NCBI GenBank assembly: GCA_001643675.2
Contig: LSRY02000005.1
Coordinates: 310,001 to 374,000, forward strand
Direction of reading: 5' to 3'
DNA from: Monocercomonoides exilis PA203
Lineage: Eukaryota > Protista > Preaxostyla
Length of the DNA stretch: 64,000 nucleotides
Made by a program: the position numbers and the translations under genes. This document shows, piece by piece, positions 2,563-62,515 of the stretch. Position 1 is the stretch's first letter. Each line of letters starts with the position of its first letter. The notes beneath the pieces were generated by a model. The model worked only from the letters and a program-made list of their open reading frames with translations, searched no databases and was not told where the DNA came from.

Positions 2563-2607
<45 letters not shown>

Positions 2608-5241: not shown

Positions 5242-5277
<36 letters not shown>

Positions 5278-29415: not shown

Positions 29416-29454
<39 letters not shown>

Positions 29455-36795: not shown

Positions 36796-39700
36796 TTAGA
36801 GTCCGATTGAGACATGAAGATCGGTATCAAATATAATCGCCATGGCAAGTGACATAAGCCCAAATATTACTCCAAGAAACAGTAACGTCCAGGCAAAGCA
36901 TACAGGCAGTGAAAGATGTTTCTTTGGAACAAGCAACTCTTGCAGTCTGTTCTGATGCATCTCCACAACCTCTGCATCCAACTCATAGGTATCTGCTGCG
37001 ACATTTTCCTTTCTTAAAGAGCGCTCCTTCGCTGATTCGTCTTCGTCCATTGCGGATCTCAATGAAGCATCTGATGGTTCGTTTGGCCTGTGTCTCATTC
37101 GCTGTGTTGTTGTGCTGCCATTTCCAGATTTGCTTCGTCTGATCGGTTTGCGGTGAACACTCTTCTTATTTGTGTGCTTTCTTCTTCGAACAACTCTTGT
37201 TGCAGAATCGCCAGATTTGAGTCTCTTGCTTTGCACTTCTTCAGGAGTTAACTCTGGAGGGATGGCATCTGGCACCTCATCATGACCATCTGCGAATTAT
37301 AAGTGTGAGCGAGAAAAAGACAAAGGATGCAAGCAAAGCATATTTAAAAAAAAATTAATAATAATAAATTTATATAAAAGAATTGATAAATAAAACAGCA
37401 ATACAACACTTGAAGCCTTAAAGACTGTAACAACACTTCAAAAACACCACAATCAAAAAAGACTCAAAACCATAAAATGCAGCTTTGTTGCATACCATTA
37501 GCAGCAGCATCTGTCATAACTGCATAGCTTGGCGAAAAGAAAGAAGGTCTCTTTGTCATTCCGTCCATTGCGGAGTGGATGGATTGCGTGGATGAGAGGT
37601 TCACTCTTGATGGAGTGAATCCCAGTCTTGTGGAAGATGCATGTTGTGGCAATGTGATTGCCTGCTTTGATGCCGAATGCAAAGAACCCATCGCCTGGGA
37701 GCCCATGGCACTTGAAGAGGGAGAGGCTGAAAGAGCAGCAGTCATGTTCATCGATGAGCCAACTGAGGAAGGTGAAGAGACGTGTGGCGACACGGCAGAG
37801 CGAGGAGCCTCCGGCTGTGGTGTTAGCGACGAAGGTGTTGCTTGTGATGAAGGTGTGGTTGGCGATGGAGAAGTCGGGTAAGTCGGAGGAGTGGTCGACG
37901 AAATTGGCATTGAGCCAGTTGAAGGCGACTGGAAAAAGGAGGTGGAAGGTGTGGAGTGCATTCCTGTTCGCGGGGTTGGTGCAGCAAATCCTGTAGACGA
38001 GGAAGATGTCGTCATCCCTGGGTTTGTTGGAGTAGGCTGAGTAGACGAGGTTGTGAAAACACTTGACGATGCAGAGGGGATCGAAGAAGGCTGAGCTGCT
38101 ATCGAAGGCGGTGTTTGCGAGCTCTGCCGAGAAGGCCCAGCACTAGGTGCTGCTTGTGAGGGGTCAAACTTGATCTCTGTTGCTGTCGCAGATGGCGTTG
38201 CTTCAAAAGGCTGATCGGCGTAAAACGATGGAGAGCGGTGTGGAATGGTCATTGTGTTTGACGATGGCGTTTGAGCAATCGAAGTTGGAGACGCCGTCAT
38301 CCTCAGCGCAGATGAATGGCGCGATCCAGAAGACTGGGAAGAGTTAGACGAGGCCGGAACAAACGAAGTTGGAGCTGCATCGTAGTTATCGCCTTCGCCT
38401 TCAGAGTCAGAATCAGAGTTGGAGTCATCGTCAGAATCGAAGCCTTCGTCGTCGGTGGTCGTGTCGTACTTCACGTTGGGATCTGCAGATGAGTCATTGC
38501 TCGGATGATTCGATGGAATATTTTCCATTTCTTTTGCTTTGAATCTGCTTGACCGTGAAGAAATAGGATTGCTTGTTACACTCGACATTTCAACAGATTC
38601 GTTGCCTTCGTAGTCATCGTCATCATCGTCTTCCTCTTCCTCCTCTTCGTCTTCATCGGAGTCAACATAGTTTTCACCATCAATAACTTCAATCTCCTCT
38701 CCTTTCTCTTTAATGTATTCCACGCCAGATTTCTTTTCTTTGACTTCATTCTCTGGTGTTTCTGGCAATCCTTCGATGACCTGAAGCCTCTTCTCATTCA
38801 CAAATCGCCAGGGCTGAGTGGACACACGGATGAAAAACATGCATGGTACCACAAATGTCACGCATGTTCCGGCTGTTGACCCAAATATGTCAAACACAAA
38901 CGAGACCTATTTCAAGTTTATAAATGTCAACAAATTGGTAAAAAAAATAAATTAAAAAAAAAATATTTCAAAATGATATTAATGTACAATATCGAATAAA
39001 TATTTTTCTAAAATAAATAAAAATATGTTCATTAACTTCATTCGAGAAAAGTCAACACGATTTCGAGAGTTTAATAAAATAAAAATATTTGCAGGAATTA
39101 TTTATCTGTTTCAAATGATCAAACTTTATGCAAAAAGATAGCCAGCACGCACATAATAACAGTCATTCCTGATCCGATCAGCCCTGTTGCAAAATGATGC
39201 TTAGTGAGCTTCCCGAACACGATCACGTTCTTCCATTCTTTTGGAATCAAAGGAGGAGGTCCTCTTCCACCGCTGTATCTCCTTTTCAGTTCGGCTTTGT
39301 CTTTCATTGTTATCAGATCCACTGCACATCTAATAATTCCCAGTAATTCAGCACGGGTTGGTATCATCATAACGGGATATGAACATATCAGGGCTGCAAT
39401 GAAGCCAATACGCGCAATTAGTACAACAACATCATTATCTGGATACATCGTCAATATATTTCCTCCAGATTCTGCTGAAAAAAACAAATCAGTAAACTGT
39501 ATGTATCCAAACAGCGAGCAGCATAGATACAACACTCCAACAAGACTAAGTGTAAAGATTGCAACTTTTTTCATTGATCGTATGCTTTTGTGTCCGAGTT
39601 CTCCTTGGATAATTGGTATGTTCTGTTGGCACCCGAATGCGAAGCATAAAGTTGAAAAGCATTGAATAATTGTCAAAGAAGGATGCACTGCCTCTGCGGG

Positions 39701-40362
39701 GATGTGTGGTGGCATTCCATCCGCTGGAGCAACAAATCTTATAAAAACAACAATTATTGCATAAATAAACGCAATGATTGCAAGTGAACTTACAGTCTTC
39801 AATGAATCCACTCGACGAAACCATGATAGAGGTTGAAAGAAGAAAAATCCCAGAATGATTGTTATAAACCAGCGTTGTAACGTAACACTTCCTTCCGGAA
39901 CTCCGGCTGCTCGTAGTAAAGAAAGAATAAAATCTCCAACAAGAATTACATATGCCCAAAGAAACCCAAAGCACTGCAAAAATGTGCAAGCTCCGACAAA
40001 AAATATGCCAATAGGACCAAATAATCTCCCTCCAATCTGAAACAAAATTTATGAAAATATCAAAAAAATTATCAAAAATTTTAAAGTTTATCTAATCCAA
40101 ATAGTCAAACACTCCCGAGCGTGTATAAGCATGTAGCATCCGCAGCATACATAAGGAAAGTGAATGATACATATGAAAGAAGGATCATTACCAAAAATAT
40201 CAATATAGCTGGCACCAATCCAGATTTAGCAAAAGCAAATGGAAGACCAAGTATTCCAGCTCCAACGATTGTGTTTGCCAAATTTGCTGTTCCAGAAAAA
40301 ACAGATGCAGCCTTTTTCTTTGATGGAACTTTTTGTAAAGGTGCTTTTTTTGATTTCACCAT
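36796..40362 (-). CDS. SLC38/AAAP (Aa_trans) amino-acid transporter, multi-exon (approx. 40362-40113, 40037-39125, 38907-37470, 37290-36796)
   Basis: NLANTIVGAGILGLPFAFAKSG, FAFGCQQNIP, FGYIQF, SYPVMMIPTR, FDIFGSTAGTCVTFVVPCMFF and a final TM WTLLFLGVIFGLMSL, separated by AT-rich introns. Exon borders approximate. Confidence 0.9.
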
Positions 40363-41142: not shown

Positions 41143-41214
41143 TGCTTCTACCTGGATTCGAACCAGGATTACAGGATTCAGAGTCCTAGGTGCTAACCAT
41201 TACACTATAGAAGC
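41143..41214 (-). tRNA. tRNA-Gln (anticodon CTG)
   Basis: GCTTCTATAGTGTAATGGTTAGCACCTAGGACTCTGAATCCTGTAATCCTGGTTCGAATCCAGGTAGAAGCA: full cloverleaf with TGG D-loop and GTTCGAATC T-loop. Confidence 0.97.
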
Positions 41215-41515
41215 GTTGTTTTGTATGAATTTATTTATGGTTTTAATTTGTTATTAAATTTTTTCTAAAAACTTTTTTTTCATTTTATTATTCATAATGA
41301 GAAGATTGTTATTTTTCCAAATAGTTTATTCATGATTTGAGCTGAACAAAACCTTTGCCATTCAATTCTTTTTATATTATCATGTTAGAACTTTTTCAAG
41401 AAATATTTTTGAATCGGAACAATGGTGAATTTAATTTCAGAATCGCAAAAGAAAATTTTTGTTCAAATAAAATCCAAACTCATAATCAGTTTTTTGAAAT
41501 TTGAAGAATAAATCT

Positions 41516-41544
41516 GGGTAATTCTTTTTGGGATCATACTTTTT
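41516..41544 (+). repeat. Left TIR of the giant element
   Basis: gggtaattctttttgggatcatacttttt, preceded by ATCT. Confidence 0.85.
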
Positions 41545-42329
41545 CTGTCAAAATTTTCGGTCTGATTTTTTTCGGTTCGAAAGTTATCAACATGTGAAGA
41601 ATATGAACGGAAAACATCGAAAAATCAATAAAGATAAAATCTCTCGTGAAACTCTTCGAAATCCTTTATTTTTAACTTGAATGGTCGCATTTTATCATAA
41701 TTTTGAAACATTGACATTGTTTTTTTTCATTCAGTTTACGTTATTCTTGAAAAACAAATGTTATCATGATAATATTTAAAAACATGTCACAAACTTCATT
41801 TGTTCGACAATCAATCAGATTTAAAAAGTTATGTTTTTTGATCTCATAAAAATTTCAATTGCTGATTTTTGGTGAATTAGAGTTTTTTCTTTTTGATCCA
41901 TCTTGAAAATAGATGTTTATAAAATTTACAATGAATGTTTCGATTCTTTTTTAAGAAAATTAAATATTAAGATACGTATATAAAATTTTATTCAATCAGA
42001 TATTTTCAAATCTCAGAATTGATATCAACGTTTCGTATTAGCAAATACATCTCACTAAAATTTAAAGCAAAAAAAGCATTTTTATAATTGGTTGTTTGTA
42101 ATTTGTTTTTTCTTAAAAGTTTAATTTATTTTTGGATTTTTTGAATTCGTTTTTTTGTTGCAATATTCTCAAAAAATATAACTTCTGCATTTAACTATTA
42201 CAACGATCGGTGAATTTTCAGAGGGAAATATTTCATGTTGTCAATAACAATTTTGAACATTTTTAATTTGACGATGAAGAATATTTAGCCGGAAGGAGTA
42301 AGTGAATTGAGCATTTGAAAGAGTTCAAG

Positions 42330-45300
42330 AAGAGTTAAAAAATGAAGTTGAACAAGATGTTGTTATTGAATGGAGTGTATTTGAAGAAGTCACCCAGAGA
42401 ACATCAAAAAATGTGAAGCGCAACCAGTGTGAGCATCAACCCTCAAGAGTCTCCGTCTTCTGCATTCAACCATCTAGACTCGTTCATCAGCGCTGCCCTA
42501 CCATCTTTGAAACCTATTCGAACGAACGGATCGAGTATCTCCACTTTTTCTTCTTCTCGAACTTTTTGCACTCGGCTGGTGATGTTGTATTCCACACCTA
42601 TGGCAAGATCTTTTTTCCTATGACAAGCTTGCTTCCTCTTTATCACCAGCCACACCTTCAACTTCCACCCTCACCCGGTGCATTCCATCTCGGCTGCATC
42701 ACACATGCCGCCCCCGCATCATCACCAACGCTGGATAGTGCATAAACTCCCCATTCTCCTGGAAATAGACTTCATGCGACACCGTCTGCATCACATACGC
42801 ACCCGGAACAACGCTCCGTGTCCTCGTCGCACTGCCCCTTTGCAGCACAATTGACCGTCCTGGCACCTGCATCAGCACCTCCACCGACCTCTGCGCTGAC
42901 GTCGTGTTTGTCAGCACCGCATCGCACACACACGCACCGCTAGCATCTTCTCCCACTCCACATACTTCCTCGCCTTCCTCCCTTCCTCATTCATCTCCCA
43001 CTCTTCGCTCACGTCATACACAAACTTTTACACAACCACCTGCTTCATCTCCACTCGTTTCCCCAAGCCACTCAAGTACAGCCCTTGTTTCCTCACTTGT
43101 CTCTCTTATTCTCTTTCTCTTTCCTTTTCTCCTTCTCCTTTTTCTTCTCCTTCTATTCCTTCTTTCCCTCTTTCTAATTCCTCCATCTCCTTCACAAACA
43201 GCACTGCGGCTGTGCCATGCTCCTAATAAACACACTCGCTCTTCCTCCCCTCATCTCAATCGCCTTCTCCTCGCAAACAGGGTGCACACAAACATGTGTC
43301 AGCGCAGCTTCAAACGCTGCTGATGCAAACGAATCGGTGCATTCAATCACATTCGCTGACACTAAAGGAACAGACCTTCCACACTCACGCGTATCCCTGC
43401 CCACCCTCTCCCTGGCACACCCAAACAGATATCGCGCAAAGCCCAGGAAGAAATGGTTCCACTCAACCAGCACAGAATGAAATGACGCCACACGATGATA
43501 TTAGTTCTCTCGGTATTCCTTCATGTTCTCCACCTGCTGGAACTTCGCAACTGGCATTTTCTCTTCTTCTTTCCAGGTACAAAGCTCATCATCTCCAATA
43601 GAGTTTTAAGAAACACAAGAACCAGAAGTGAAAACATTACACATATACTCTGATTCCATCCGCATTCCCATAGGCATCGCTATCTGAGGATCTGATGGAA
43701 TAGCCATTAAGAAAGAGCCACAAAAGCCATATGCCCAACGAGGCATCGCACCAGCATTGCTTATCCTCTGCCATGCATTCGACTGCATCTATATTCTCGG
43801 ACTCTGCCCTAATCCTGCCTCTGCCCCTGCCCTAGCCATCCCAACCATCGGCGTTGCCATTCTCGATCCAGGCCTCGATCCTTTCTCCATCTGCCCCATC
43901 TGCCCCATCTGCCCTTGAACATCCATTGCACCCCCCAGCAGACGCGGCATCAGCTTCAGCTCTTCGTTGTTCCGGATGAAGCACCCGCTCATCGTGCACA
44001 TGTCACTCAGCTGCATATCGTTGAAGACAATCTTCTGCATGTCAGGCAGAATCCCTTCTTTCTTCTGCACAAGCTCCTTCTGCTCCGCCACCGTCGTCTC
44101 CTTCGTCACGCAAACTCGAATTATCTTCCCTTGCATCGTCCTCACCTGCACTACCATCTTCCCCAAATCTCCTCCTTCTTTGAATGCTCGTCCCGATGCT
44201 CCTTTCACACTGCTCTTTCTTCCTCTTTCTTCTTCTTCTTCTGCCTCAATGAAACCCCCATCATCCAGTCCCAATGGAAGCACTTTCTCAAATACCTTCT
44301 CCTCTTCTTTCTTGTCTATCAGCTGCGACCTCAGCTATTTTTCCACATTCTCCACCGACGCCACACACCTCCTCAAACTCCTCTCCAGCAATTCTTCTCC
44401 TTCTCTTACCTCTCCTTCTCTTCTTCCTTTTTCTCTTGCTTTTCGTTTTCATCAATTGCTTCACAATATCTTCTTTTCAACACTTTCTTTCAGAATCAGC
44501 TCCGAGTGCATCTTCTGCAAAACATTCTTCTTCGGGTCAAACACATTCATTAGCCTCATTTCTCTCAATTATCCTTCTCTTTTTTCTTTTTCTCTTCCCT
44601 CCGTTTTCCTTCTCCCACGGCACAGATTCAGATCCACTCATACCTTTTTCGCAACGAAATACTCATTGTCTGTAGCCACCACTATCACAGTGCTCTGCCC
44701 TTTCCCTGCAATCACTTCCTTCGGGATAACAGCACGCCTCCTCTTTCCTTCATACAGTGCTTCGTTCAGTACAACTGCAGTTGTAACCCCCAAAAAGTTG
44801 ATGTTCTTCCAGTCTGAAACGCTTCTCCTCCAGTTCTGCGCTGCTTCCATTCCCTCTCCTATCACAACGTTCATCATCATCATCTTCTTCTTCTTCCTCG
44901 CCATCGTGTCTACCATCATCTCTCCGCTTGCTGCTCCTGCGCAGATTGCATCCCCTGAAAATGCACTCGCCTCCTTCCTCCAAGTCTCCTGCGTCACAAC
45001 CCCGTGCATCAGCACAGAAGGCGCATCCAGCGCGTTCCCCAGCCGCTCTGCTGCCGTTTGTCTTCGCTGGATGTATTCTTGCTCTGTGCTCAGCCTCTTG
45101 TCCTACGTGTTGAACGACCTCACCACCTTTGCTGTTTCCACCTCTGCCTGACTTCCTTCCTCCAACCCAGTCAGCTGCATCTCTGCATCAAACACCTGCG
45201 CAAGCACACTCCCAAACACATGAACACGCGTAATCACTGTGCAGTTGCTCAGAGTCACCTCCACTTTCCTTGCTTCTACTCCTTCTCTCATCTGCCTAAC

Positions 45301-46300
45301 TCCCACAATCACAACTGTAGCATCACCTCCTCGTCACCAAATCTTCCGCATACCATTTAGAAGCGATGTGTTGTCCTGTCTCACACCGCAATTGATTTCT
45401 TCTTTCGATTTTTAGATCATGTTTTCCCCATTCATTCCATCTTTCTTGTTGTTTTCAACCATCTTGCATGGCTCATTCAGCGAAATAGACGTCCGCAGCC
45501 CCGTCGCCCACTCAAATAGCTCAAATTCCCCACAAGTACAATCAGCCGACAGAATTGCCTTCCCTTCCTTCATCACCATCTTCTCGCTCACATCACGCAG
45601 TGGGACAATCCGCTCTGTTCCGATCATTTGCGTCAACGAAACCAGTCACTTCTCAATCCCCTTCTTCTCATTATTCGCTCTCTCCTTTTCTTCCTCTTAA
45701 ATCTTTTCCTCTTCACTCCTTTCCTCTTCTCCTTCATCCCATCCCTTCACCTTCCAGCTTTTCCACCACACGCCTCGACTGCAGTAATTGCGACACCAGC
45801 CGATTTATCACCGACGGAAGTAGCGACGGGTCAAATAGATCGCAGATCGATGTGAGCGCATTCACATCTGCAGCTGCAACGATCCGCTTTTTCCCCGACT
45901 TCGTGCTCACAGATGCTGCAAGCGATGGAGCTTGACCAACAAACGGAACAGAAAGCACCACCTAAAGCACAACATCATCAGCACACGAAACACCTCCATT
46001 CAGAACTCCCCTCCGAGCCACAACATATCCCTTGAAGCGTCTGTTGCTCCCTTAATTACGAATTCTTTTTATTTGCATGCGCCCCAGCTTCTTCTGACAC
46101 AGCAATTAGCATCCGTCTATCGATATCGTCCATCGCTGCTGCAGACGTGTATGACGACGAAACCGCCGACGCATACGAAGAGTTAATTGCAGGCGAAGAT
46201 GAAGATGATAATTACTTATCATCTCCTTCCGCTTTCTTCTCTTCGCTGCTCTGCCTCCTGAATGGAGAAGAAGATCTGCGTTCTGCTTTAGTTGAATAAG
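42330..46300 (-). pseudogene. Decayed large-protein gene with an internal ubiquitin-like domain; C-terminal part resembles uncharacterised alpha-2-macroglobulin-like proteins
   Basis: Chain of minus-strand ORF pieces broken by stops and frameshifts. Ubl at 43930-44157. The segment CDAVLTNTTSAQRSVEVLMQVPG...YFQENGEFMHYPALV recalls A2M-like C-termini (from memory, low certainty). Confidence 0.55.
43930..44157 (-). other. Ubiquitin-like domain, exactly 76 aa, ending LLGG
   Basis: MVVQVRTMQGKIIRVCVTKETTVAEQKELVQKKEGILPDMQKIVFNDMQLSDMCTMSGCFIRNNEELKLMPRLLGG aligns gap-free with ubiquitin (TLTGKTI, KEGIPPDQQRLIF, LRLRGG). Confidence 0.85.
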
Positions 46301-48997
46301 ACGAAGTCAAAAAAAAAAAATAGAATGAAAAGAATAATGCTGTGCTGTTTTCCTGAAATAAAAATGTGCAAGAGATGTGAGATAATTTTTTAAAAGTTGA
46401 CCAACAAACTTCACTTTGGCTTCTTCAATTTTCGCATCAGAAAGTTAAAACAGTTGATGAAGTCATTCACCTCAAAATGATGATCCTTCGAAGTGTTTTC
46501 CTTTCCTTTCCTTTTATTTTTTGAAATTTCATTACAGATTGTATGATGCCGAACTTTGAATAGTTAATATTCATAAAATTCCGATTTTGTTGATTGCAAA
46601 ATAAAAGGAGACATAACAGAATGTTAATATTTGACTAAGAAACAACAATTAAGTTTGCTTGTGTATATCAGATTTCTTCAGTTCTTTCGAGAAGTGTACA
46701 GGATAAACAATCAAATTGACTTCTTATGCATATGCCATTTCCTTTGTTTTATTGGTCATTCATAATTGTAATTAGTGACTTTTGTGTATATCTCTTTTCA
46801 ATTGTTTATTTGTTATTTAGTATTTTTTTAATACTCAACCAAAAGATCATAAATCAACATTGAAGCTTATTTTTTTGTGACTATTTTAATATTTTTAACA
46901 TGTTCAAAAATTCAATAAGTTTGAAAAGAACAATTAAAAAAACCAGTAAACAAGAATAAACCAAATTCTTGATCCAAAACTCTAATCACAAATTGAGAGC
47001 AATTCCAACTGTAAATGCGATGCTTCACAGAACTTTTTGAAGTTTAATAAATATTTTGAAGTTGGTGCAGCCATTTTAGAATGATTATTTTGAAACAGAT
47101 AGACTGTTGATTGAAAGTTGAAAGGAAGCTGAAGCTCAGAAATGAAAGATAGTCGAATGGAAGATGAAAGAGTTGCGTGATTGTGGAAGATGTGTGAAAA
47201 AATTATCTGCTGAAGCTCTGCAATTGAGCAATATTGGCTAAGGAAGAAACAAGTTTGTTTGAAGATGAGGTTGCAATATGATAGGAGATAAAAGTATTTT
47301 TTCGATAATTGTGAAAGAAAAATGAATTTTGATGAAGGAAAATGTGAGTTGAGTGAAATGGTTGATAAAGAATGCTGATAAGAAGAAGAAGAAGATGATG
47401 ATGATGAAGGAGGAGAAGGAGAAGGAGAAAAAGAAGTGAATGAAGAATTTCGTGCTTTCATGTTGCTTGGCGAAGAGTAATGATAAGGCAATGAGCCAAT
47501 TGTTGACGATGATGATGAATGAGAATAACTTGTATTTTCGCTTGTTTTATGAGAAAACTACCAAAAATTCGACAGGAATGAATCCAAAGTTTCATTAATA
47601 AAAGCATATGTTTTAAAATAGAAAAAGTCGATGTTATAATCAGATCAAGAAATTGATGGATTGCGATGTATCCAGATCTTCTCGATCATTCTCATTGGCT
47701 TTGCTGTTCACCACTTTCATTTGAACGAACTTTTTTATGCGTTGCTGTTTCATTTATCGGTTTAATCGCTTCTTTTTCTTCCTATTTTTCTCTATTTTTT
47801 CTTTTTTTTCTTCTACTATCACATCTTCTTCAACTTTCACTTAAAAACATTTCTAAAACAGATAAATAGACAGTATCAAAACTTTTTCATATTATTCTTG
47901 TGAATACTCGACAAAACTTTCAATTCTTCCATATTCCGATATATGTTCAGCAACATTGTTCGACTTTTCGTCTCGGTATATAACTTCAATTCTTTTATTT
48001 CCTTTTTTTTTCTCATCTTCCTCTTTTCCCTCGTTGCAATTATCTCTTTCTCTTCCTTCCTCATTGTTCTTCCCTTACTGCTTCAGCTGCACTCGTTGGA
48101 GTCATATTATGTCGTTCATCAAGTTCTGATATCTCTTGCTTTTTATCATCTGCATAACTGCTTCTAGGTACGTTGCTTCCTCAAATATTCATTCTTATTT
48201 ATTTAGTGATCTCTCATTCAGCATTGATCTCACTGAGTTAACTTCTTGAAATATAAATTTGTTTGTGCTGTATGGTTTTTCGAATATTCTCTCTTAAGCC
48301 TAATGAAAATTTTAACTAAAAGGATGTCTGGTTTCAGATGCCTTATAAATAAATACTTATTCAAAGGAGAGAAAATCAAAAATAAGCAAATAAATGAATT
48401 TGAATGTGCTGGAAAACTGTGGATTGATAAGAAAACATTGGATGTGTTTTCTGCAATTGATTGAGCAAATATATTCATGTGATTTTTTTGTCGAACATCG
48501 TTAAATAAAAGCACATCTTTTTCAAAAGCCAATATTTTTTTCAATAATTGTTGCTTTTTAAATTGGAATCTCTGCAATTCACTTTTGCTGAATTAAAATG
48601 ACACAAAACGGAATAAAAAGGAGAATTTGTGAAAATTTGTATTGCTTTGAATTAAAATCGTTTAAAGCAGCCAAACCTTGTTTTATTCAAAAGTTGTATC
48701 GGTGCAAGCTTCCGTTCTGCAGAAACACATTTTTTCCCCTTTCGTTCAACGAATATTTGTCAGGATAAACTAATAATTTAGAAAATTCTCAGTGAAAACG
48801 TTAAATAAAATCATATTCTTGAAATTTGAAAAGTGTTCAATATCCATCAATTCAAAAAATGCATGTGCTCTATATTCATTTTCCACGCATTGATGTTTGT
48901 TTTTAAAAGTTAAAATTATCAACAATAAAAGATTTCGCAGATCATCCCATTTGTGGAACTTTGTTATCACAAAGAATAAACTATTTTTTGTTGAATC

Positions 48998-51900
48998 ATG
49001 GAACGAATCAAGTTTTCTCTTTTATCAAACTCGAGGAAAAGCGAAAAATGCAGAGATGTTTGGGAGTATCTATCAAACAAATCTGCAAATGATTGTGTGG
49101 AAATGCTGAAGTACATGTTTTTCCATACAAATACGGGTAAAAAAATATTTCCCTAGATTCAAAATATATTTAACGGTTTGTTTTTATTTTTCGTCTTTGT
49201 ATTTATATTAATTAAACTCTTTTAAACTTTTGATTACTGAAGATCGAAATCGATATGTAATTTTGCGATTAGCGTCTGCGTATAATCGAGAAGAAAATCC
49301 ACATACAAAAGTGACGCTTTTAAAATGTGTTTGCCAGGAATATGCCCTCTCGCAATTGATCGATTTGGGTTTTGAATGTTCTCATGGAAGCTATTATCAC
49401 GCAAAGGATAATAGCTCGTTCACATCGTTTGATTTTCGAACTCCAAAAAAAGCTGCTCTTCCCCCATCAAAACGAAGTTTGATCTAATTCTTTATTGAAA
49501 AAATGTGTAACTGTTCATCTTTAATTTGTTCTTTGTCATATATTAACATTTTTACAGAGATGAGCCCAGAAGATGAAAAAGTTTTCACTGATTTCATAAA
49601 TGAAAATTCAACCGAATCATCGAAATGCATTTGTAAGTTGTCACAACAGAATAACAGTTTGTCTTCTTATTGGGTTCTTTAATTAAAAGTGTTGAAGAAT
49701 TATCACTTTCAGAATCTTCAATGGAAATAGATGATGATTTCAAAATCATAAACTGCAGCGAAGAAATGGAAGAAGATGAAGATCCTCTTTATCATTATTT
49801 CACAGAGAACAACACAAGAAGCGAATATTTGCAGACAGTAGAAGAATCAAACAATTCAAAATACAATGAATTCATTCACATGGAGATAGATGATGAAATT
49901 TCACTTTTGGACGTTCAATGTGAAATGGATGAAGAAAGCTGTTTCGAACCGGAAATAAATTTGGATTTATCAGAATTAGCATCGCAAAGCAATAATGGAG
50001 AAAATATGGAGATTGAAAAAAATGAAGAACTGCATTATTCCAACGAAACCAATGAAAATTCAATAAAGAATAGTCAAGGCTCGATTTCTTCTTGCAGCTC
50101 AATCATCGAATGCTGTTCAAAGAATAATCAGCACGCTGCACAAACTGGAACACAGAGAGAAAACAAGAATTATTATCCGTTACCAAACATGGGAAACACT
50201 TGTTATCTCGCTGCAATGCTACAAGTGTTCCGTTCTATTTATTTGCACTCAGAACGATTTTGTACACGAAAAGGGAAGATTTCACACTATTTGCATCGTT
50301 TGCTGGACATTGTCCAACCTTTGGATTTTTCAGTTAACATAAACAATGATAATGTCCCACAATCTTGGTCCTTGCCTTTTGTGAGATGTTGGGAAAAAAG
50401 GCATGGACTGAAAAAGGGTGAACAACAAGAATGTTATGAAACATTTTTTAATATGTACCAGGATCTCATATCAATAACACCAGCATTAGCAAACCAAATG
50501 AGAACGAACCAATCATTTCCAAGAAAATGTTGTGAATGTGGATCATATGAGTATGGAATTTGTGAATCAACTCCATTAATTCGACTTCACGGTTCAGATG
50601 TCATTTCGGAATTTAATGAATCATTTTCATCAGGTCAAACAAATACAAACAATAGAGAGGCCTTTTGTCTCAGATGTCAGAAAAATACAGATCAATATTC
50701 AACAATGAATATCCTTCAATTCCCTCATATTTTAACAATCACACTTGAATCTGATAAATTTGATCAAAAGAAAATATACAACATTCCATTACAAATTTCA
50801 TTTTTAAAGAATGAAGAAACAATTAAGGCTTTTCCTTTCCATTCAGAAAATATGTGCAATTATCGATTGATAGCAGTTCTGTTTTATCGAGGGTCGAAAG
50901 ATTGTGGACATTTTTATGCAATGTGTAGAAGCAGATGCCCATCACCAAAATGTTCATCATACAAAGATTGTTGGTATATTTGTAACGACGGAGAAATATC
51001 CTTCATTAATAATGAAATTACAACAGAAACAAACTCTCACATAAATAAAGGTTCAATTCCGTTTATGATTGTTTACTCTCAGGAGAATCGTGGATGCATT
51101 CCTGTTTCCGATATTGCTTCACCAAATTTGTTTCAATTGGGACTATCACATCAAGGAAGTTCTTTTTCGAATAATATTTCATCAATGAATCAGAGTAAAA
51201 CAAATGTTCGTTCGGTTTGCATTAATTGTGATGGTTTATTGCAAGATCCTTCTTATTCACTTCATCCTAATACGACAAATCCACATCATTCCACTTCACC
51301 TTCAATAATATATGATGATGAAATTACTGAGGTTCATTCTTCATCAGAAAATCACCACAAAAAATCGACCTTATTTGATTTATCAAATCGACCTTCCGGA
51401 TGTTCCATCCCATCTGAAATAGACACTTCATTTCTTCATTTTTCAAACGAATTTTCTTCTGAATGCAATTATCAAACGAACTCAAAAGACAATGAAACTA
51501 ATAATACTACAATTAATAATCATCTCACTCATAATTCAACCGCATCTACAAAACCAAATGGAAAACAATCTCTCTTTCCAGAAATGATTTCATCCAGCCA
51601 TTTGAGTGAAACAAAAAACAGATCAACAAATCCTAATCAATACTTTTCAACACTTCACAATTATCGACATCAAGATACACAAAATGCAAGCGTCAATAAT
51701 CCATTCTTTCATGGTTCTCCAAACAATTCTTATTCACATATTAAAAAACAAAAAGTTCGTATCATTAATACAACAAAAGCGCAGCTATTCAGAAAGCTAA
51801 TGGAAACCACGAATATTAAAATGTCAAAAAGTTCTTTCTACAAAAAGACAAAACACCTCAAAAGGGCTTCCAGGCGAACTGACTTGTGTAACTTATGTGA

Positions 51901-52993
51901 AATGTTCAATCATCTGAAGAAAAAAGAAGAATATCTTAAAACAAAATCACAAACATTGAATGATCAAGAGCAACAAACAATAAGACTAATTGAAAAGCAT
52001 CGTTTTCTGGCGTCAAATCAACGTCAGCACTTCCATCAAATCAAAAGGAACATTGCATTTTCGGAAGCGTTGGTTTTGTTCGACTTTAAAGAGAATTGGA
52101 CGCTTCCTATTTGCAAAAATCAAATAAGCCGAGATTATTACGAAAAAGAGGAAATCACACATTTTTGTGTAATTGTTTACATTGTTAACAAGAAAGGAGA
52201 CAAAGAAAAGCACATTTTTAACTTCTTCTCAAACGCTCTATCTCACGACTACCGTTTCACCATTGAATGTCTGAAGCAAGTTTTGGAAGATAAAATCGTT
52301 AAAGACAAGCAAACTCTTCATTTTGTATGTGATACAGGGCCACACTTTCGGAATTCCCAGCTTATGCATTTTCTTCTTTCTGACAACTCTTCTCCCGTCA
52401 AAGGCAAACGAACAACTCTTTCCTTTTTTTGTGAAAAACATGGAAAAAGTGAATGTGACGGAGAATTCGGGAATCTGACAAACTGTGTAAAAAATAACTT
52501 GCCCAATGGACCTTCACTTAATAATATTGATGAACTTATTAAATTTCTGAAAGACCATACAGATGACTCATATGATTCCCTCCATAACAACTCGGATAAT
52601 TATCAAAAGACAACGCGATATTTTGTCAAGTGTGATGCAATTATGTAAATTTTGTTTTTATTTTCTTCATTTCTTTATTAACTCAGACACTCTTCTGGAA
52701 ATAAAATACGATGGAGGAAAATTGAAGCGAAGTCCATAAAGACGTATTTGTTCTATGAGAAACGAGGTAATCAAATTTTCAGATCTGTGTGTTCACCACA
52801 AAATTCCCGAGGAAAAGAGTTAATGAACTTCCTTGAAAAAAGCATAAGAGATGAAAGGATGATAAAATCCTCAAAAAAATATTCTCGCAAAACAGAAATG
52901 TTTGAAATAGGGAATGCCACAAGAAAACTATTAAATGATAGGAAAAAATTGGATACAATTTGTTTTAAAAGTTCTGGTCTTATTGATGAGTAA
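48998..52993 (+). CDS. Sola2-like DDD transposase with in-frame USP (peptidase C19) deubiquitinase domain; 5 predicted exons; premature TAG in exon 1
   Basis: Phase-consistent exons 48998-49175, 49243-49476, 49558-49656, 49713-52629, 52687-52993 (3735 nt, 1244 codons plus stop). USP motifs: PLPNMGNTCY, EQQEC, GHFYA, WYICNDG, FMIVY. Transposase motifs: TDLCNLC, FDFKEN (D 52082), CDTGPHF (D 52331), HGKSECDGEFG (D 52457). Confidence 0.85.
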
Positions 52994-53006
52994 TTTTGTT
53001 TTTGTT

Positions 53007-53253
53007 GAATTTTATATTGAAACGAATGACGTTTTTTGATTCGTCTGCTGCTCAAGCCATTAAGTATTTGCTTCAAACAAATGCTTTCTGGTACCCCAGT
53101 TTTCGCTCAAGAGCAAAACAAATGGGGCTAGGCTGATTCCGTCCTGGGACTGTGCTGTGACCGGTCCAGCACAGTCCCTTGAAGGCTTTGGGTCCAGAAT
53201 CAGCCTCCCAGGGTAGACAATCATTAAATAAATTCGTTTCAATATTGAAATTC
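53007..53253 (+). ncRNA. Unassigned multibranched structured RNA candidate (3'UTR element or ncRNA)
   Basis: Nested stems: 53014-27/53232-45 (14 bp perfect), 53043-49/53212-18, 53062-70/53078-86, 53094-98/53123-27, 53130-39/53197-206 (10 bp perfect), 53146-57/53167-78 (12 bp perfect). G-U pairs favour the + strand. Followed by a T run. Confidence 0.6.
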
Positions 53254-54390
53254 TTTTTTTTCATTAGTTTTATTTTTTCTGTTTTTCAAATGTCGGCATT
53301 TGATGTTTTATTATAAAGTATCACATTGATTTCTATTTAAAATATTCATTTTTCAATTAACTTTTGTTCAGTGAAATGATCAAGAAATGTATTATATTAA
53401 TATTGAATTATAATTCACAAGTTTTCTACACATTTTCAGAGCAGATTGGATTAGTAATTTAAAGTGCGTTGAAAAAAAACAAGAACTTTCGTTGATTTAG
53501 CTTTGAATTAACAATAATATTTGTATTAACTGAAATTGAAAAGCAAATCATTCAATGATTTATCTATTGACATTGATCAAAAAGCGAATTCATAAAGTTT
53601 GTTTTCATTGCAACAATGAAATATGCTATTTAACGATCAATTGTGAATGATTTATAAATGCAACTGTTGCTTTTGAACAATTTGCTGTAACACTTTCTTT
53701 TCAGAAAATTGAAATGCCTGCGAAGCGTTTTTGAAGCACGGAAAAACACTAACAAAGATTCATAAATATTGCCTGAATGATGAATAACACTTCAATATAG
53801 ACCAAAATATTTTTTGGAATTCACTTTTTGTTACAATGAAGATTTTGAATGCAGAGATAAATAGTTTGTTAATAAGGAAATAAGTGAAAATGAACGAAGA
53901 AAGGAACTGAGAAAAAAGAATCCGAAAAAAAGAACAAAATTCAGAGATCAAAGGAAAGTCCAAAGATAAGCATCCAATTGAAAACATGGCTTATGAATAT
54001 TATGTTCAAATCACAGAAAAATCTGCGGGAATCTTATAACGGAGTTTGTTGTTTGCATCATATTGCTTATATTTATTGTGAAGCTGATTAAGCTTTATTC
54101 ATCCTTCTTTCGTTTTTTTTGTTAGAGCGCATTTACACAAATATTCATAAAAAGATTTTTCTTTCTTTTTCCTTCTTTGCGTATATGTGATCTGAATTAC
54201 TTTTTTTGATGATAAGAATAAATGTTATTTATATATTAATATTTTCAAGGAAAGTTACTTTGTTCCCGTTTTGTGAGTGATAGTGTTCAACTTCTTTGTG
54301 AAGTTCACCAACAACAACTTCAATAATGAAATTTTATGTCTTCTTCTACTCCATCTGATCTTTCTTTAGTTGTATTCTCAAATAATCCGG

Positions 54391-55546
54391 TTTCTTCTTC
54401 TTCTCCTCCTTCTCCTTCCTCTTCTCCTCCTCCTCTTCTCCTCCTCCTCTTCTCCTCCTCCTCTTCTCCTCCTCCTCTTCTCCTCCTCCTCTTCTCCTCC
54501 TCCTCTTCTCCTCCTCCTCCTCTTCTCCTCCTTCTCCTTCCTCTTCTCCTCCTCCTCTTCTCCTCCTTCTCCTTCCTCTTCTCCTCCTCCTCTTCTCCTC
54601 CTCCTCTTCTCCTCCTCCTCCTCTTCTCCTCCTTCTCCTTCCTCTTCTCCTCCTCCTCTTCTCCTCCTCCTCCTCTTCTCCTCCTCCTCTTCTCCTCCTC
54701 CTCTTCTCCTCCTCCTCCTCTTCTCCTCCTTCTCCTTCCTCTTCTCCTCCTCCTCTTCTCCTCCTCCTCTTCTCCTCCTCCTCCTCTTCTCCTCCTTCTC
54801 CTTCCTCTTCTCCTCCTCCTCTTCTCCTCCTCCTCCTCTTCTCCTCCTCCTCTTCTCCTCCTCCTCTTCTCCTCCTCCTCCTCTTCTCCTCCTTCTCCTT
54901 CCTCTTCTCCTCCTCCTCTTCTCCTCCTCCTCTTCTCCTCCTCCTCTTCTCCTCCTCCTCCTCTTCTCCTCCTTCTCCTTCCTCTTCTCCTCCTCCTCCT
55001 CTTCTCCTCCTCCTCCTCTTCTCCTCCTCTTCTCCTCCTCCTCTTCTCCTCCTCCTCTTCTCCTCCTCCTCCTCTTCTCCTCCTTCTCCTTCCTCTTCTC
55101 CTCCTCCTCTTCTCCTCCTTCTCCTTCCTCTTCTCCTCCTCCTCTTCTCCTCCTCCTCTTCTCCTCCTCCTCTTCTCCTCCTCCTCTTCTCCTCCTCCTC
55201 TTCTCCTCCTCCTCTTCTCCTCCTCCTCCTCTTCTCCTCCTTCTCCTTCCTCTTCTCCTCCTCCTCTTCTCCTCCTTCTCCTTCCTCTTCTCCTCCTCCT
55301 CTTCTCCTCCTCCTCTTCTCCTCCTCCTCCTCTTCTCCTCCTTCTCCTTCCTCTTCTCCTCCTCCTCTTCTCCTCCTCCTCCTCTTCTCCTCCTCCTCTT
55401 CTCCTCCTCCTCTTCTCCTCCTCCTCCTCTTCTCCTCCTTCTCCTTCCTCTTCTCCTCCTCCTCTCTTCTCCTCCTCCTCTTCTCCTCCTCCTCTTCTCC
55501 TCCTCCTCTTCTCCTCCTCTTCTCCTCCTCTTCTCCTCCTCCTTTT
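54391..55546. repeat. 1.16-kb pure polypyrimidine complex tandem repeat
   Basis: No purine seen on the + strand; shuffled units cttct(cct)n and ccttctccttcctctt. Confidence 0.95.
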
Positions 55547-58500
55547 ATTTTCCTCCTTTTATTTATTCCAAAGAAGAAAATAATCTTATGTTACAGCATC
55601 AGCGATACGATAACTGTGCAGGCGTCAATCCTTTTTCGTCAAGATTTTCAAATTTTCTCTGTCAGATTGTTTGGAAAGACATTCACAGAGATCAACAACG
55701 TGAGATGAGTGCAATACGCGTTGAGTAATTGCTCAGGAGAAATAATGAATGAGAAAGGAAGAGAAAGAGAAAAGAAGAAGAACTCAGAAATTGAGCTACG
55801 ACACCACGAGGTAGCGAATGAGATGATGGCACTGCAATCGGTACAAAGCGAATGGAAAGAAGGCAGAAGGAGAGAAGACGACAAGGCAATCGAAGTGGCT
55901 TCGTGGAAGCAAACATAACAAGAAGTGGAAAAAAAGAAACTTGTTTTCTAACTGTGGCTGTCGGGGAATGATGGAGAGGAGAAGCTGAAGACCGAAAAGC
56001 AGCAGATGCATGAGAAGAAGGAGATTGTTACGAACCTGAAGCATTATATATATAAACCTATGTTAATGCACAATATTTTTACACGGACCAAGGCGAAACT
56101 TACGTTGCATTTGACTCACTTGTTGTCAATGCTATCGCTAACGATGATATTCTAAGAGGAATAGCGTTTTGAGGAGCAAATGAAAAAGCTGGCATGGAAC
56201 AACAAAGAAAAGAGGAGAATGATGATTGAGGAGAACAAACGAGAGATTATGCAGAGAGAGAATAAGGAGAAAGCAAAGAACGCAGAAAAGTCAAATACTT
56301 CAAAAATTATTGTCACAGTTCATCCTTTTGCAGATGTGTCTCAGAAGTCGCAAACGGTAAAAGCATCCCACAAGACATATAAGTGAACACCGTTTCTCAT
56401 CCAACCTCGCTTCCATCCACTTTTTCAATTTTCAATATCATCTATGAGCAGCCAAGGCAACCTCTTTCCTTCCAAGTGAAAAAAACCAGTTAGGTCAACA
56501 AAATTCAACTTGTCAATTTTCAAGAGATAATCTCCTGCTTGGACGAGCTTGTATCTGTTATGAAGCAGTACCTGATACCATTCAATAAAATTTGTGGAAC
56601 AGGAGATGGTCAAGTGGACTGGAGAGTAATTAAAAGTGACAAAGAAGTTGAAGAGGTTCAGGAAAGAGCAGACAGAAAAGGAAAAGGAAAAACTTCATGC
56701 GGAGCTGAGGAAGCTGAATGAAGGAGAAAAGACAGGCGAAAAGATGACTGCGAAGTTGAATTAGAAATCGGAGTTAAGGGGACGCATAGAAGAGAAAAAG
56801 AGGATTTTGAAGAAGGAGAACGAGTAGAGCAAAGAGTTTGTGCAGAACGATAAGCTGCCACAGTTTGTGAGCCCCCCGAACAGTAAAACTTCTCAGGTAT
56901 ATCCAATATCTTCTTCTTCTCCTTTTTCTTCTGCTGATGCTTCAAATTTGAGGTCATCAAGAACAAACATCTTCAAAAGTTTTCTGAAAACATGATTGAC
57001 TTTTCGGTTTCCACATAATTCTCATTATGGCTGGATTTAAGAGGAGAAATGGCAAAGACAGATGAACAGAAATGTGAAATATGTATGACTGGTTATATGA
57101 GCATTTTTTTGGAGTTGTTTTGTATGATTTTCGTAATTTTTTTTTATATATATGTACTGAAGGATCAGAATATATTTGTTTTTCTTATTAGTAATTTTGT
57201 GCTTTCATGAAACAACTTAAATATTTGTTGTTATCACTTTTCTTCTTTTTCTTCTTCTTTCTCATCCATGAACTTTTTTGACTCATTTCAGAATATGTAA
57301 TTTCACTATCTCATCTTCTGAGTGACATCTCAGCTATTCAAGCCGCTCTCATCGCGCAAATTCGCTTCCTCTGCCCTGCCAGCGAAGATACAATTTCACT
57401 TCCTTCTTTTCTCCAAAAATAGAAAACAATAAAATTTTCTACAAACACTTCTTGGCCTTCTGCCACCAGGACTATTCATTTTCCAGGTGCAGATGAGCAC
57501 ACCACATGCACCACTTCCTTCTGTGATGATTCATGGAAACCACTGAAGAAGGGATGAAAGAGATGCAGGGAGAGAAAGTGAGGAAGAAGAAATGAGGCTT
57601 GAACTGCCGTTTTGCCAGGATCTGCACTCAATATCATCATTATTGATGCTTCTGGAGGTGCATCAAGGAAATTTTGTGGAGCGGCTGGAAAAGAGAGAGA
57701 GAAAGAGAAAACAGAAAAATAAAAGGAAGAGAAGAGGAAGAGAGAAGAGAGAAGAGCAAAAAAATAAAGAATTTTAGGAAACAGCCCAAATGATGGAAAA
57801 GAAAAAGATAAGCAAGGAAAGCCAGAAGAGAAACATGAGAAAGAAGCGAAAGACTGAAAAGAAGAGAAGGCCAAAGAAGGCACGGAAGAAAAGAAGGAGA
57901 AGAAAAAAAGAGGGAGTGAGAGATAAAAAAAAATAAAAAGAAATGCAATCCGAAGGAGAACTTTTTTTTCTGTTTATGGAGAAAAATTATCTCAAAATGC
58001 CTCGCTTTGAAAAGAACAGTTTGCAACTAATTTGTTAGATAAAATGAGTCTCAAATTCAATATTGTTTCAATTTTTTTTTTTTTTTGGACTTAGAAACAC
58101 AGACAGATTATATTTTTAAAAAACATTATTGACATTTTTTAACTGCGAATCGATAATTACTGTGAAGAATAAAATGCCAGTTTTGAAGAAAAGAAAAAAA
58201 TGAAAACGAGAAATATATGGAATTCAATGAAACTTTTAAAACAACAATAATATTCAGTTTAATAAGAGAATGAATAGATTACAAACAACTTACACTCAAT
58301 TTATTGCAAAATTTGATACAATATTGGATAGTGTTGTTGCATATTTGAAACAAACAATAAAGTGATTAAGTTTTTCATTATTGTTCACGATTGTGCGAAA
58401 CAGTAACATTTGACAAAATTTTTCCAAATCGAAATGATTGCATTTCTATTGGATAGCGCAAAATTATCATAATAGATCATAAACATTCATGCAATATGTG

Positions 58501-58707
58501 CGAACCGTAAAAGTTGTTTTTCATCAAAAAAGACAAATATCAAACAAGTTACGTTTTTAATAATGGTCATCCAACAATAATCATTAAAAAAACTATTTTT
58601 TTTTATAATTGTTGACTTGAAAGTTGATGACTGATATTATTCATGATGCCTGAAAGCATTTTTGATGTTTGAAAACAGTTTTTTCATAATCTTAAACTTA
58701 CCCCGAA

Positions 58708-58736
58708 AAAAAGTATGATCCCAAAAATAATTACCC
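58708..58736 (-). repeat. Right TIR of the giant element
   Basis: aaaaagtatgatcccaaaaataattaccc, followed by ATCT. Confidence 0.85.
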
Positions 58737-59005
58737 ATCTTTCTTTGAAATTTAATTTTTCATTATTCATTTGTCCATTTTTAACTATTTTAACCACTGT
58801 GTTTGATGGAGAATTTGTTATTGAAACTGTAAAACATGCGATGTTCAAAAGAAACAGAAAATAAAACATATACGACTTTTTTAAAAGATTTATCTATATT
58901 GTTTATGAACATGAAAAAATCGAGAAACAGAACGTTTGTTAAAATCTTTGAAAATAAACATTCTAATTCCCCATTATTTCGAAAAAATTCTTCTCCATCA
59001 AATTA

Positions 59006-59401
59006 CAGGTATCGCAAAAAAATGCCGAACATTGCACAAAATTCCGGACAAGATCGATTTCAAAATAACTGCAAGAAGGAAAATTAGACAATTTTCCTCA
59101 AAAGATATCTCATCAACACAAACTCATTTGATATTCATAATTTACTAAGCTTTATCGTTTGTGCTCAGAAAAAGTTGTATTAAAAAACTCGAAGAAACTC
59201 AAAATCCAATTTCTCCGAAATTTCAAAAATGATTTTTACTGAGCACAAATGAGGGTATTTTGAAAGTTTTGTGTATCACTTTTGTTTGTATTAACTAGAT
59301 GTATTTTGAGGAAAATTGTCAGAATTATTCCTCTTGTAGTTTTTGTGACGTCGATCTTGTCATGTATTTTGTGCGATCTCCAGTATTTTATGCGACATCT
59401 G
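59006..59401. mobile_element. 396-bp foldback MITE with CAG...CTG ends and TA TSD (Tc1/mariner/pogo-type)
   Basis: Imperfect palindrome centred near 59203: gacaattttcctcaaaa/ttttgaggaaaattgtc, gacaagatcga/tcgatcttgtc, tttgtgctcag/ctgagcacaaa. TA on both sides. Confidence 0.8.
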
Positions 59402-60381
59402 TATTAGAATTTTCAAATGAAAATATCAATGAAAGTTGCGGTACACTTCTTTCGGTCAAGATAAATAATGTGTGATTGCTTTTCAAATCATAATTTTTTA
59501 GGGTTTGTTAATAATGTGAAAAAATTAATTGCTTTATGAATTTTGTTCCACACAATTGTTTCTGAATTTTTTCTCAATTAATTGTCTTTTTCTTTATTCT
59601 AATTCACAGGAATGTCAGATGAAAAAAACGCTCTGAAGAAAAAGTCTGGAACAAATCATTGAATTGTTCATTAAGACAAAAATATTATCCCAAATTCAAA
59701 AGTTTTTCATCATCAGCAGAAAATTTCCTATCCAAATGTGTGATTCTTTTTGAAAAGTCGCAAATGTTTAATATTCTTATGAATCAAATATTTCACATTT
59801 AGCTCATATTTTTGTTTCCACTCACGAATCTTTTTCAGAATGAATGAAATAACAATATCCAGGAATAGATTCCATAAAAGTGAAGTTTGGTGTGTGAAAA
59901 CTAAAATTTGAGCAAAATATGAAAATTATTGTTTTTTGATAATTAAACATTTGCGATTTTTCAAAAAGAATTACCCAAATGTTGAGTGAAAGACAATTAT
60001 AACAAATGCCAAATTTGGAAATGAAAAAACAGCTGAGGTACCATATAATAGCTTCATTTCTTTTCAGGGTTTATTTATGACTATACAAAACGAGAATTCA
60101 AACTGTAAAATAATAAAAAAGAAAAAACTTGAAAGCAAAAATTATTGCACATATTTCGTTTTCACGAAAATGAAAGTCTGATTTGGACAATGAATTGATA
60201 TTGATTTGATTTATATGAAGAAATATATCAGAATTTTTCCTCTTGTGGTCACAGAGAAAAGGATGTTGAACAATATTTTGTGTGATGTCCCATATTTGAG
60301 ACATAATCAATATTTCTGTTCAAAGACACATGACATATTATCATTATCTGAAGTTTTCATAACAAAATTCAGAACATTAAG

Positions 60382-60859
60382 AACACCTCTGTGACATGAC
60401 AAGAGAAAATTGAAAAAATGACAAAATGACTGACACGATATTTATGATTTGTCAAAAAGGGTAATTTGTAACTATTTCATAATTCTTAATTACAATAATA
60501 ATTTATTTGAAAATCCACATAAAATAATTCTTATTATTTAAAAAAATCATATTTTTTTTCTAATGTGATCAAGTTCCCAATATTTATTTTATTTGACACG
60601 AAATGTCAGTTAAGGAATATTTTTGTCACAATTTGTCATTGACCGTCACTGACGGTCACTGACAAAATACAAAAAACGACAAGATATTACAGATCCTATC
60701 AACAAATCATTTCCAATGTGCTATGAAAAGTCTTTTGAAGTTTTAGCAATCGTATGTTTTATATTAGTTTTAAAAAATTAAATTTAATTTTATTTTATTT
60801 TATTTTATTTTTTTTGTGACAGACGAGGCTTCAAGTTATTTGTCAGGTCACAGAGGCCT
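60382..60859. mobile_element. ~470-bp MITE, CCTCTGTGAC family (copy B)
   Basis: TIR cores at 60386 and 60856; collinear with copy A; direct repeat aacattaag at 60373-60381 and 60860-60868. Confidence 0.9.
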
Positions 60860-60988: not shown

Positions 60989-61243
60989 GGGTGATTATTT
61001 TTGAAAAAATATTTTTTCGAAGAAAAATTTCGGTACAAAAATTTTATTTTGAATTTTGTCAATGAACACAGAAAAGAAATAACTTAAACAAAAATTATCT
61101 CTGTCTTTCTTTCTTATCAAACAATGTCTTTTGATTCAATAAAATGAATAAAACATTTCAACAAATGTTTTATTTTCGAATTCATAAAACTTTCTTAATT
61201 ATCCACACACCGAAAAATGTTATGATTTCAAATATAATAACCC
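60989..61243. mobile_element. 255-bp MITE with Sola2-like ends (copy 2)
   Basis: Starts gggtgattatttt and ends aatataataaccc; AAAT on both sides (60985-60988, 61244-61247); left part similar to 1171-1230. Confidence 0.8.
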
Positions 61244-61743
61244 AAATTTTTTTAAACATGGGACAAAATATTTTTCTTTAAGCATTTTCATTGAAAAATT
61301 ATGAACTTTTCATTGACTTTTTGAGACCATAAAACGCAATAAAAATGGGTGCATTTTTTGGCTTTCGTGAGATGTCCCTATTCTTTATGTTTTGATTTCA
61401 ATGATTCCTGTTTAAAAATTATTAAGTCCGATTTATTTTGAAATCTGAGAAAGAGAAGTGAAGTTATAAGAAAAGCTATTTTTCAATGCTTCGTGCAAAA
61501 AATGCTTGAAAGTCCATATTTACCCCCACATATTTTTGAATAATTTATTAACAACACACTAATAGTGAAAAAGAACTTTCTTTTAAAAAAATGTTACAAA
61601 ATCATCTTTAAAAAAAAGAATTATATAAAAAATAAAAAATGGAGAATCAATATTTCGATAGTGAAAAAAATAATATTAGAAACAAACATTAGATGTAAAT
61701 GTTTTGTAGTAGATAAAATAAGACAATTAAATCTTTTTTTGCT

Positions 61744-61817
61744 GGCCCTGTAGCGTAGCTGGATAGCGTGTGGGATTTCTAATCCCGAGGTCGTGGGTTC
61801 GAATCCCACCAGGGTCG
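61744..61817 (+). tRNA. tRNA-Arg (anticodon TCT)
   Basis: GGCCCTGTAGCGTAGCTGGATAGCGTGTGGGATTTCTAATCCCGAGGTCGTGGGTTCGAATCCCACCAGGGTCG followed by a poly-T Pol III terminator. Confidence 0.97.
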
Positions 61818-62515
61818 TGTTTTTTTTCCATATTGCTGATTTGATAACTTACAACCTATTTCATTTGTACAAATGATTCATGAAAAACAGAAATCAATAG
61901 AAAAATTTGAGATTTGATTGCTGATTTTTTTATTTTCATATATAAAAATTGATGAACAGTATTCAATTTTCTTTTGTAATTTTCTTTTGAAAAAATGAAT
62001 AATTCCTTAACCTTTTCTTATTTCATTTTTTATTCAATGAAAACACACACATATATGATTTAATAAGAATTCATATATCATTAGAACTTGGTTTTCAACG
62101 ATCTTTTCATTGATTTCATTGCGAAAGTTGCATTATTCTTGAATTGTTGGAAAAAAACTGAAAAATATCTGTAATCATGAATTTTTGGATAAGAAACATT
62201 TAACAAAATTTGCAATGCTTTATTGTGAATATTTCTTTTCAATTATTGCAGAAACTCGTCAAAGGGCTAACTTTCTTATTGATTTATCTGATATGAAAAA
62301 TTTTATTTGTTTGAATGTATTTACCAAACATGTGTATTTTCAACACATCTGCTTTAAAAAATCACAACCGAAAATGATTGATTCAAATTCGCTTCAATAT
62401 TGCATATAATTTTTAAAGCTTTTCGCAAACAAACCAAATTATAATTTGGATTAAACTGCGTAAACAACATAAAAATGATCATATATGCCATAGCTTAGTA
62501 TTATAACATCCGAAA

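Follow-up and report, generated by a model that had tools for sequence, protein, structure and literature searches.

The sequence analysed here, referred to as the window, is a 64,000-nt stretch of the genome of Monocercomonoides exilis PA203, a mitochondrion-less gut protist (contig LSRY02000005.1, positions 310,001 to 374,000; contig C47 in our numbering). The window contains a transposon of 17,221 bp extending from a GGG at position 41516 to a CCC at 58736, and its features are collected in the table. The neighbouring genes to the left include two very large kinase ORFs of 2,699 and 4,385 aa (13720–21819 and 22522–35679), an amino-acid transporter piece (39119–40045) and, 300 bp from the element, tRNA-Gln (41143–41214); tRNA-Arg (61743–61818) is located on the right side.

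Table. Features of the M. exilis transposon and its exon model, in window coordinates (TSD, target site duplication; TIR, terminal inverted repeat; USP, peptidase C19 domain).
Feature	Position	Strand	Remarks
Left TSD, ATCT	41512..41515	.	directly outside GGG end
Left TIR, 29 bp, GGG start	41516..41544	+	13 close genome copies
Decayed captured gene, ubiquitin-like domain ending LLGG (43792–44283)	42650..45750	-	Pfam ubiquitin E 1e-11
Exon 1 (model)	48998..49175	+	TAG at 49154, window copy only
Exon 2, Sola2 N-terminal domain	49243..49476	+	similar to N-terminal regions of homologues without USP (best E 8e-6)
Exon 3 (model)	49558..49636	+	in phase; splice sites preserved in 11/11 copies
Exon 4: acidic linker, USP, linker, CxxC-H motif, DDD core	49690..52629	+	
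USP (peptidase C19) domain	50165..51094	+	Pfam UCH E 2e-15
Sola2 DDD catalytic core (DFKEN, CDTG, HGKSECD)	51740..52629	+	Sola2_PPa-1 homology
Last exon	52687..52993	+	other copies stop at 52967–52969; splice choice agrees with paralogue P0001
89-nt conserved structured motif	53124..53212	+	two stems, conserved loops, just upstream of AATAAA
CT-rich 14-bp tandem array	54393..55543	.	expanded in window copy only
Right-arm relic	55810..57930	.	70% identity to a single other locus in the genome (C18)
Right TIR, CCC terminal	58708..58736	-	12 close genome copies
Right TSD, ATCT	58737..58740	.	directly outside CCC end

The two TIRs, 17.2 kb apart, were identical at 28 of 29 positions, the single mismatch being at position 9, and both the coordinates and the letters of ends and flanking ATCT given in a preliminary description of the window were verified. 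As that description had also stated, the similarity of the other end-like sequences in the window is lower. Most of these pair into elements of about 255 bp. Non-autonomous elements of this size with related GGGT-type ends were located at 1171–1426, 60989–61243 and 11947–12207, the first two within perfect 4-bp TSDs (ACCT and AAAT, respectively).

In the M. exilis assembly (82.3 Mb, 101 contigs), the TIR pattern produced 133 matches, against 0 with the reversed control. Pairing of the ends by TSD, as had been suggested, resulted in 12 two-ended copies with both ends on the same contig and an end spacing of 15–21 kb, and the transposase core between the paired ends was 93–97% identical to the window core. 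All 12 pairs were bordered by perfect 4-bp duplications of the form AnnT (ATAT in five, including the C13 copy, AAAT in three, and ATGT, ATTT, ACAT and ATCT in one each), nine of which fit the AWWT criterion (PMC3627910), and the termini were GGG...CCC in all copies. The TIR signal together with the perfect duplications means that the ends are not due to chance. Eleven copies including that of the window were read end to end, when the interiors of the C13 and C24 copies and the diverged families were covered by coordinates only. The fully read copies were all collinear from end to end and 90–100% identical, with a common backbone of 15–17 kb, and differed merely by nested insertions, deletions and the length of the CT tract. 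Homology between copies ended exactly at the TIRs, in unrelated flanks. Since the C23 and C44 copies, situated at different loci, were separated by only 7 substitutions over 16.8 kb, the whole unit has moved very recently.

Thus, the unit that moves is the entire 15–17 kb sequence, bounded by the 29-bp TIRs and duplicating a 4-bp AnnT target, and the proposal of one single element was upheld. Many related ends and elements of about 255 bp exist in the genome, from which two unrelated small elements could have supplied the window ends, or the block could be a segmental duplication; with matching TSDs in 12/12 pairs, homology stopping at the ends and unrelated flanks, both readings were ruled out and retain a practically negligible probability. 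An empty site for the window copy, which the preliminary description had recommended searching for, was not found in the assembly, in which the first ca. 235 bp of the right flank are unique; this is expected, because a single strain was assembled. One partnerless left end (C24:1197732) tracks the element for ca. 1.3 kb, after which similarity stops.

The catalytic core query retrieved 984 relatives in a search of 1.8 billion proteins, and the published Sola2_PPa-1 protein (P0055, Heterostelium album PN500) was recovered in this search with an E-value of 4e-21; in pairwise alignment it was 27% identical to the window core over 278 aa (E 3e-30). The three Asp residues of the DDD triad, at 52082, 52331 and 52457, were kept in the 11 copies and were 99–100% conserved across 150 homologues; the upstream CxxC-H motif is conserved as well. 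Sola2 termini follow the rule GRG...CYC, with which GGG...CCC of the window element agrees. The element is accordingly a member of Sola2 on every feature examined, i.e. transposase homology, DDD triad, TSD and TIR termini, and the initial assignment to Sola2 with a DDD transposase gene was correct.

The dictyostelid Sola2 elements PPa-1, PPa-4, PPa-5, DFa-1, DFa-2 and DFa-3 (Bao and Jurka 2013, PMC3627910) have a homologous transposase with the motifs RTDxC, DFKEN and HGKSECD, and like the M. exilis element they combine short inverted repeats, 4-bp AT-rich TSDs and large size with a second gene inside. Dictyostelid elements of 10.3–15.3 kb carrying a second gene, Fanzor1, have already been published (PMC3627910), so the size of the window element is not exceptional as was first supposed. 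The differences concern the TIRs (12–22 bp in dictyostelids, 29 bp here), the TSDs (AWWT versus AnnT), the transposase, which is without USP in dictyostelids, the 89-nt motif, which was not found at a PPa locus, and the passenger, as no Fanzor was found in the M. exilis element. The Fanzor motif was not seen in the two element copies scanned, and no TnpB or Fanzor was detected in the M. exilis genome with PF07282 or a Fanzor1 exon as query, both of which are weak tests.

The five-exon model of the Sola2 transposase, built from DNA alone and checked per exon, predicts a protein of about 1,237 aa, and places the USP domain between the N-terminal domain and the DDD core. The exons are in phase, all splice sites were preserved in 11/11 copies, and the model was intact and open in five of them (C26, C41, C23, C19 and C80). 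The core had a dN/dS of 0.20 among copies. Reads of four runs over the gene, all of which look like DNA and represent one sample, contained no splice joints. The window copy, with the TAG in exon 1 and read-through past the usual stop at 52967, probably encodes a dead transposase; this is likely rather than certain, because the TAG would be spliced out with an alternative donor at 49137. Such a copy would have been moved in trans, or would have been broken after insertion. In the C21 copy (L039/L040), a 1.87-kb foldback-like nested insertion with very long inverted arms was located at the end of exon 1 (window-equivalent position 49167).

The USP domain inside the transposase was overlooked in the earlier reading. 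Its catalytic residues occur in the order Cys (50201), His (50909) and Asn/Asp (50984/50987), and zinc-finger cysteines are present; the catalytic Cys and His were kept in all 11 copies. Comparison with human PDB structures of USP34, USP21, USP8 and USP2 returned E-values of 3e-7 to 4e-5. As the similarity of exon 2 is to the N-terminal domain of homologues that lack a USP, and the USP precedes the core in exon 4, the USP domain represents an insertion. On the genome scale, by coordinates, a USP match of 48–100% identity was situated just upstream of 52 of 54 cores, and weak USP matches adjoined many more distant cores. The USP was absent from 150/150 core homologues, many of which are partial, and a length-limited search with the USP region returned no homologue. 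A single-sequence AlphaFold model (pLDDT 32) was unusable and was discarded.

Evidence of selection on the USP was modest, with dN/dS values of 0.46–0.50 among young copies and 0.43–0.71 for the best frame of non-coding windows by the same method. In the C91 and C21 copies, the middle of the USP is occupied by a segment of about 500 bp (window-equivalent 50400–50900) with an identity of only 65–68% to the other copies but 90–96% between C91 and C21; its zinc-finger cysteines are changed, and the C13 copy looks similar. On sequence grounds, this segment is a product of recombination with another family.

Transposon-borne ubiquitin or SUMO proteases have been described in Ginger1 (OTU, Ulp1), Mutator (Ulp1) and Helitron (OTU, VTD), and one C19 case has been published, the Trichomonas protein XP_001314237.1 with transposase_11 plus peptidase C19 (PMC2836005, PMC9741609). 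In these as well as in M. exilis, the protease is joined to a transposition protein. None of them is a Sola2, however, when the M. exilis USP sits inside the transposase and is common to many diverged families; for Sola2, no literature report of a protease-transposase fusion was found. A deubiquitinating role that protects the transposase from degradation is rather probable for the domain, because protective or chromatin-related roles have been proposed for other transposon deubiquitinases (PMC9741609, PMC2836005). The USP would strip ubiquitin from the transposase, or from chromatin or repair proteins at the site. In a Sola2 homologue from Logan SRR25904989 (P0005), the core is preceded by ADGECG, an OTU-like Cys motif with no Pfam match, and this is possibly an independent protease insertion.

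Approximately 13 kb of the element is non-transposase sequence common to all fully read copies. Its description as cargo holds for the part that is a captured host-like gene, the Ubl-containing relic recognised at the outset and now supported by Pfam, but not for cargo specific to each copy, as the backbone is fixed in 11 copies. Other copies with different cargo, which had been anticipated, did not appear, and a Pack-type transposon was rejected since the 11 copies are collinear with no differing captured genes. Paralogues of the captured gene occur elsewhere in the genome with 70–89% identity, and the closest, on C1, has no detected Sola2 part nearby, which makes a host gene family the likely source.

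The captured gene retains an open frame of 688 aa in the C41 copy and has one stop in C26, and the GG-ending ubiquitin-like domain near the end of the gene shares the element with a deubiquitinase; it could accordingly be a working second gene whose product serves the USP as partner, substrate or decoy. This is quite improbable, as the gene is disrupted or has lost a part in the other 9/11 copies, including copies with intact transposase, its dN/dS of 0.53–0.62 lies inside the non-coding range, and no counterpart was detected in the sister-family arms. The window copy lacks about 620 bp of the gene that four other copies keep. None of the cargo frames showed clear selection by dN/dS among copies. 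In the sister family, the left ends are located 8.4–13.6 kb upstream of the USP, compared to 8.6 kb in the window family, and long arms therefore look like a trait of the lineage. We infer that the arms derive from a single ancestral capture: host-like sequence would have been acquired once in the family ancestor and would now be decaying, with no working payload.

The CT tract had been counted as cargo and is indeed present, yet it is no family trait: the array covers 1.15 kb in the window copy and 83–170 bp in the others, and here the array may truly have expanded, or its length may be an artefact of assembly. One non-autonomous element of about 255 bp is inserted in the C26 copy, in its left arm.

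The 89-nt motif behind the transposase gene has a G+C content of 62% in a neighbourhood of 26%, and its hairpin folds better than shuffled sequences (z -3.1). Compared with 128 other windows of 89 nt, it showed the smallest number of variable sites among copies, and it was 100% identical over 90 nt in families with cores only 54–58% identical. In assembled reads, the borders of the motif were sharp in unrelated flanks, with loose ends at 53124–53126 and 53212–53218. The covariance model produced 103 genome matches, and 71/76 cores had a match at most 1.5 kb downstream in the same orientation (expected 0.0008 per core), at a nearly constant distance of 490–520 bp for cores of over 48% identity. 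M. exilis has two reported poly(A) signals, and one of them, AATAAA, follows the motif within 15 nt in the other copies. The distance between the motif and the right end of the element is 5.5 kb, and the sequence downstream of the motif is fixed. The preliminary description had listed a structured RNA among the cargo; the hairpin is in place, but it has long been a fixed component of the region around the transposase gene and is not cargo.

Outside M. exilis, the covariance model matched metagenome contig L042 (E 5e-8), 110 nt behind the stop codon of a Sola2 gene with no USP. In this sequence, which as the one outside sequence supplies all the covariation, 12 pairs were changed on both sides and 0 were broken, the loops were fixed, and the G-U pairs fall on the sense strand. 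The L042 transposase was sister to those of M. exilis with a support of 97 in a quick tree (SH-aLRT) of Sola2-like homologues only. Because the sister gene has the motif without a USP, the motif probably predates the USP insertion; loss of the USP in L042 is possible instead. Exact search of metagenomes gave no match to the motif, it was not found at more distant Sola2 loci, and ten viral pattern matches were attributed to chance.

The first loop and the 3′ tail contain an invariant 5-bp pairing, with no covariation behind it, and may form a pseudoknot. Rfam covariance models, including ribozymes, SECIS, snoRNA and xrRNA, gave no match (best E 0.22, well short of the gathering score), and ARAGORN made no tRNA call at the motif. 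Hand fitting to an HDV-like ribozyme failed on both strands, the hammerhead core was missing, and hand fits to the folds of twister, SECIS, Y RNA, SRP Alu and tRNA failed. Omega RNAs of Fanzor and TnpB, retrotransposon ribozymes of the HDV-like, hammerhead and twister types and viral xrRNAs are likewise compact structured RNAs tied to a mobile-element gene, and the possible pseudoknot closed by the 3′ tail is a further likeness; in contrast to them, the M. exilis motif is internal, not at the element end, and has no Rfam match. No paper was found on a structured RNA of this type in a Sola element.

The fixed distance to the gene speaks for a role in cis, and on balance we lean towards a cis-acting RNA in the 3′ UTR of the transposase mRNA, which would determine the stability, the translation or the 3′ end of this mRNA. 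The variable stems, fixed loops and possible pseudoknot would be compatible with a self-cleaving ribozyme or an exonuclease block. More tentatively, this clade of cut-and-paste transposons might depend on an RNA of its own of an undescribed class, self-cleaving or transposase-binding, older than the USP and shared across species.

The published Sola2 elements carry Fanzor1 (PMC3627910), and the sharp borders in unrelated flanks and extreme sequence constraint would also suit a separate small RNA acting in trans, either as a transposase cofactor or as a scaffold remaining from a Fanzor guide RNA that has since been lost. We regard this as unlikely: the weak tests described above revealed no TnpB or Fanzor in the genome, Fanzor RNAs run into variable flank at the element end (PMC13565253), when the motif is internal, the Sola2-Fanzor locus L041 lacks the motif, and the constant spacing suits a cis role. 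Lower still is the probability that the motif functions at the DNA level, be it as a hairpin, a promoter part or a protein-binding site, or that gene conversion has homogenised it among families. The families do recombine, as the divergent USP segment in two copies demonstrates, and 100% identity between diverged families is unusually high even for RNA; the L042 stems, however, are rewritten with pairing kept, loops fixed and G-U pairs on the sense strand, and conversion cannot yield stems that are rewritten but paired.

The window element is most likely a member of a young Sola2 family of autonomous cut-and-paste transposons with a USP-bearing transposase, arms that are probably decaying and a motif that may act as RNA in cis. 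Its novelty is in the inserted USP and the conserved motif, and the size and captured relics are least novel. For the USP-bearing family, defined boundaries, a target preference and five apparently intact copies are now available, and with a defined element the question of why transposons carry ubiquitin proteases becomes testable. Fanzor passengers aside, eukaryotic cut-and-paste elements are, to our knowledge, not known to require an RNA structure. The motif, with covariation support and a position behind nearly every transposase of the clade, is small enough for direct assays of self-cleavage, exonuclease blocking and transposase binding.

Unclassified repeats are listed as 35% of the M. 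exilis genome (PMC8767320), part of which the Sola2 lineage may explain. Other repeats in the window were a palindromic repeat of about 400 bp (59000–59405) with at least 40 genome copies of ca. 80% identity, inverted poly-A/poly-T arms 2.6 kb apart (2512–2611 and 5245–5344), and a 228-bp direct repeat, 87% identical, with its two units 54 kb apart (6486–6713 and 60561–60788). On the ENA metagenome contig L050 (positions 1–6600), about 6 kb upstream of a Sola2-like gene is densely filled with short repeats in direct and inverted orientation.
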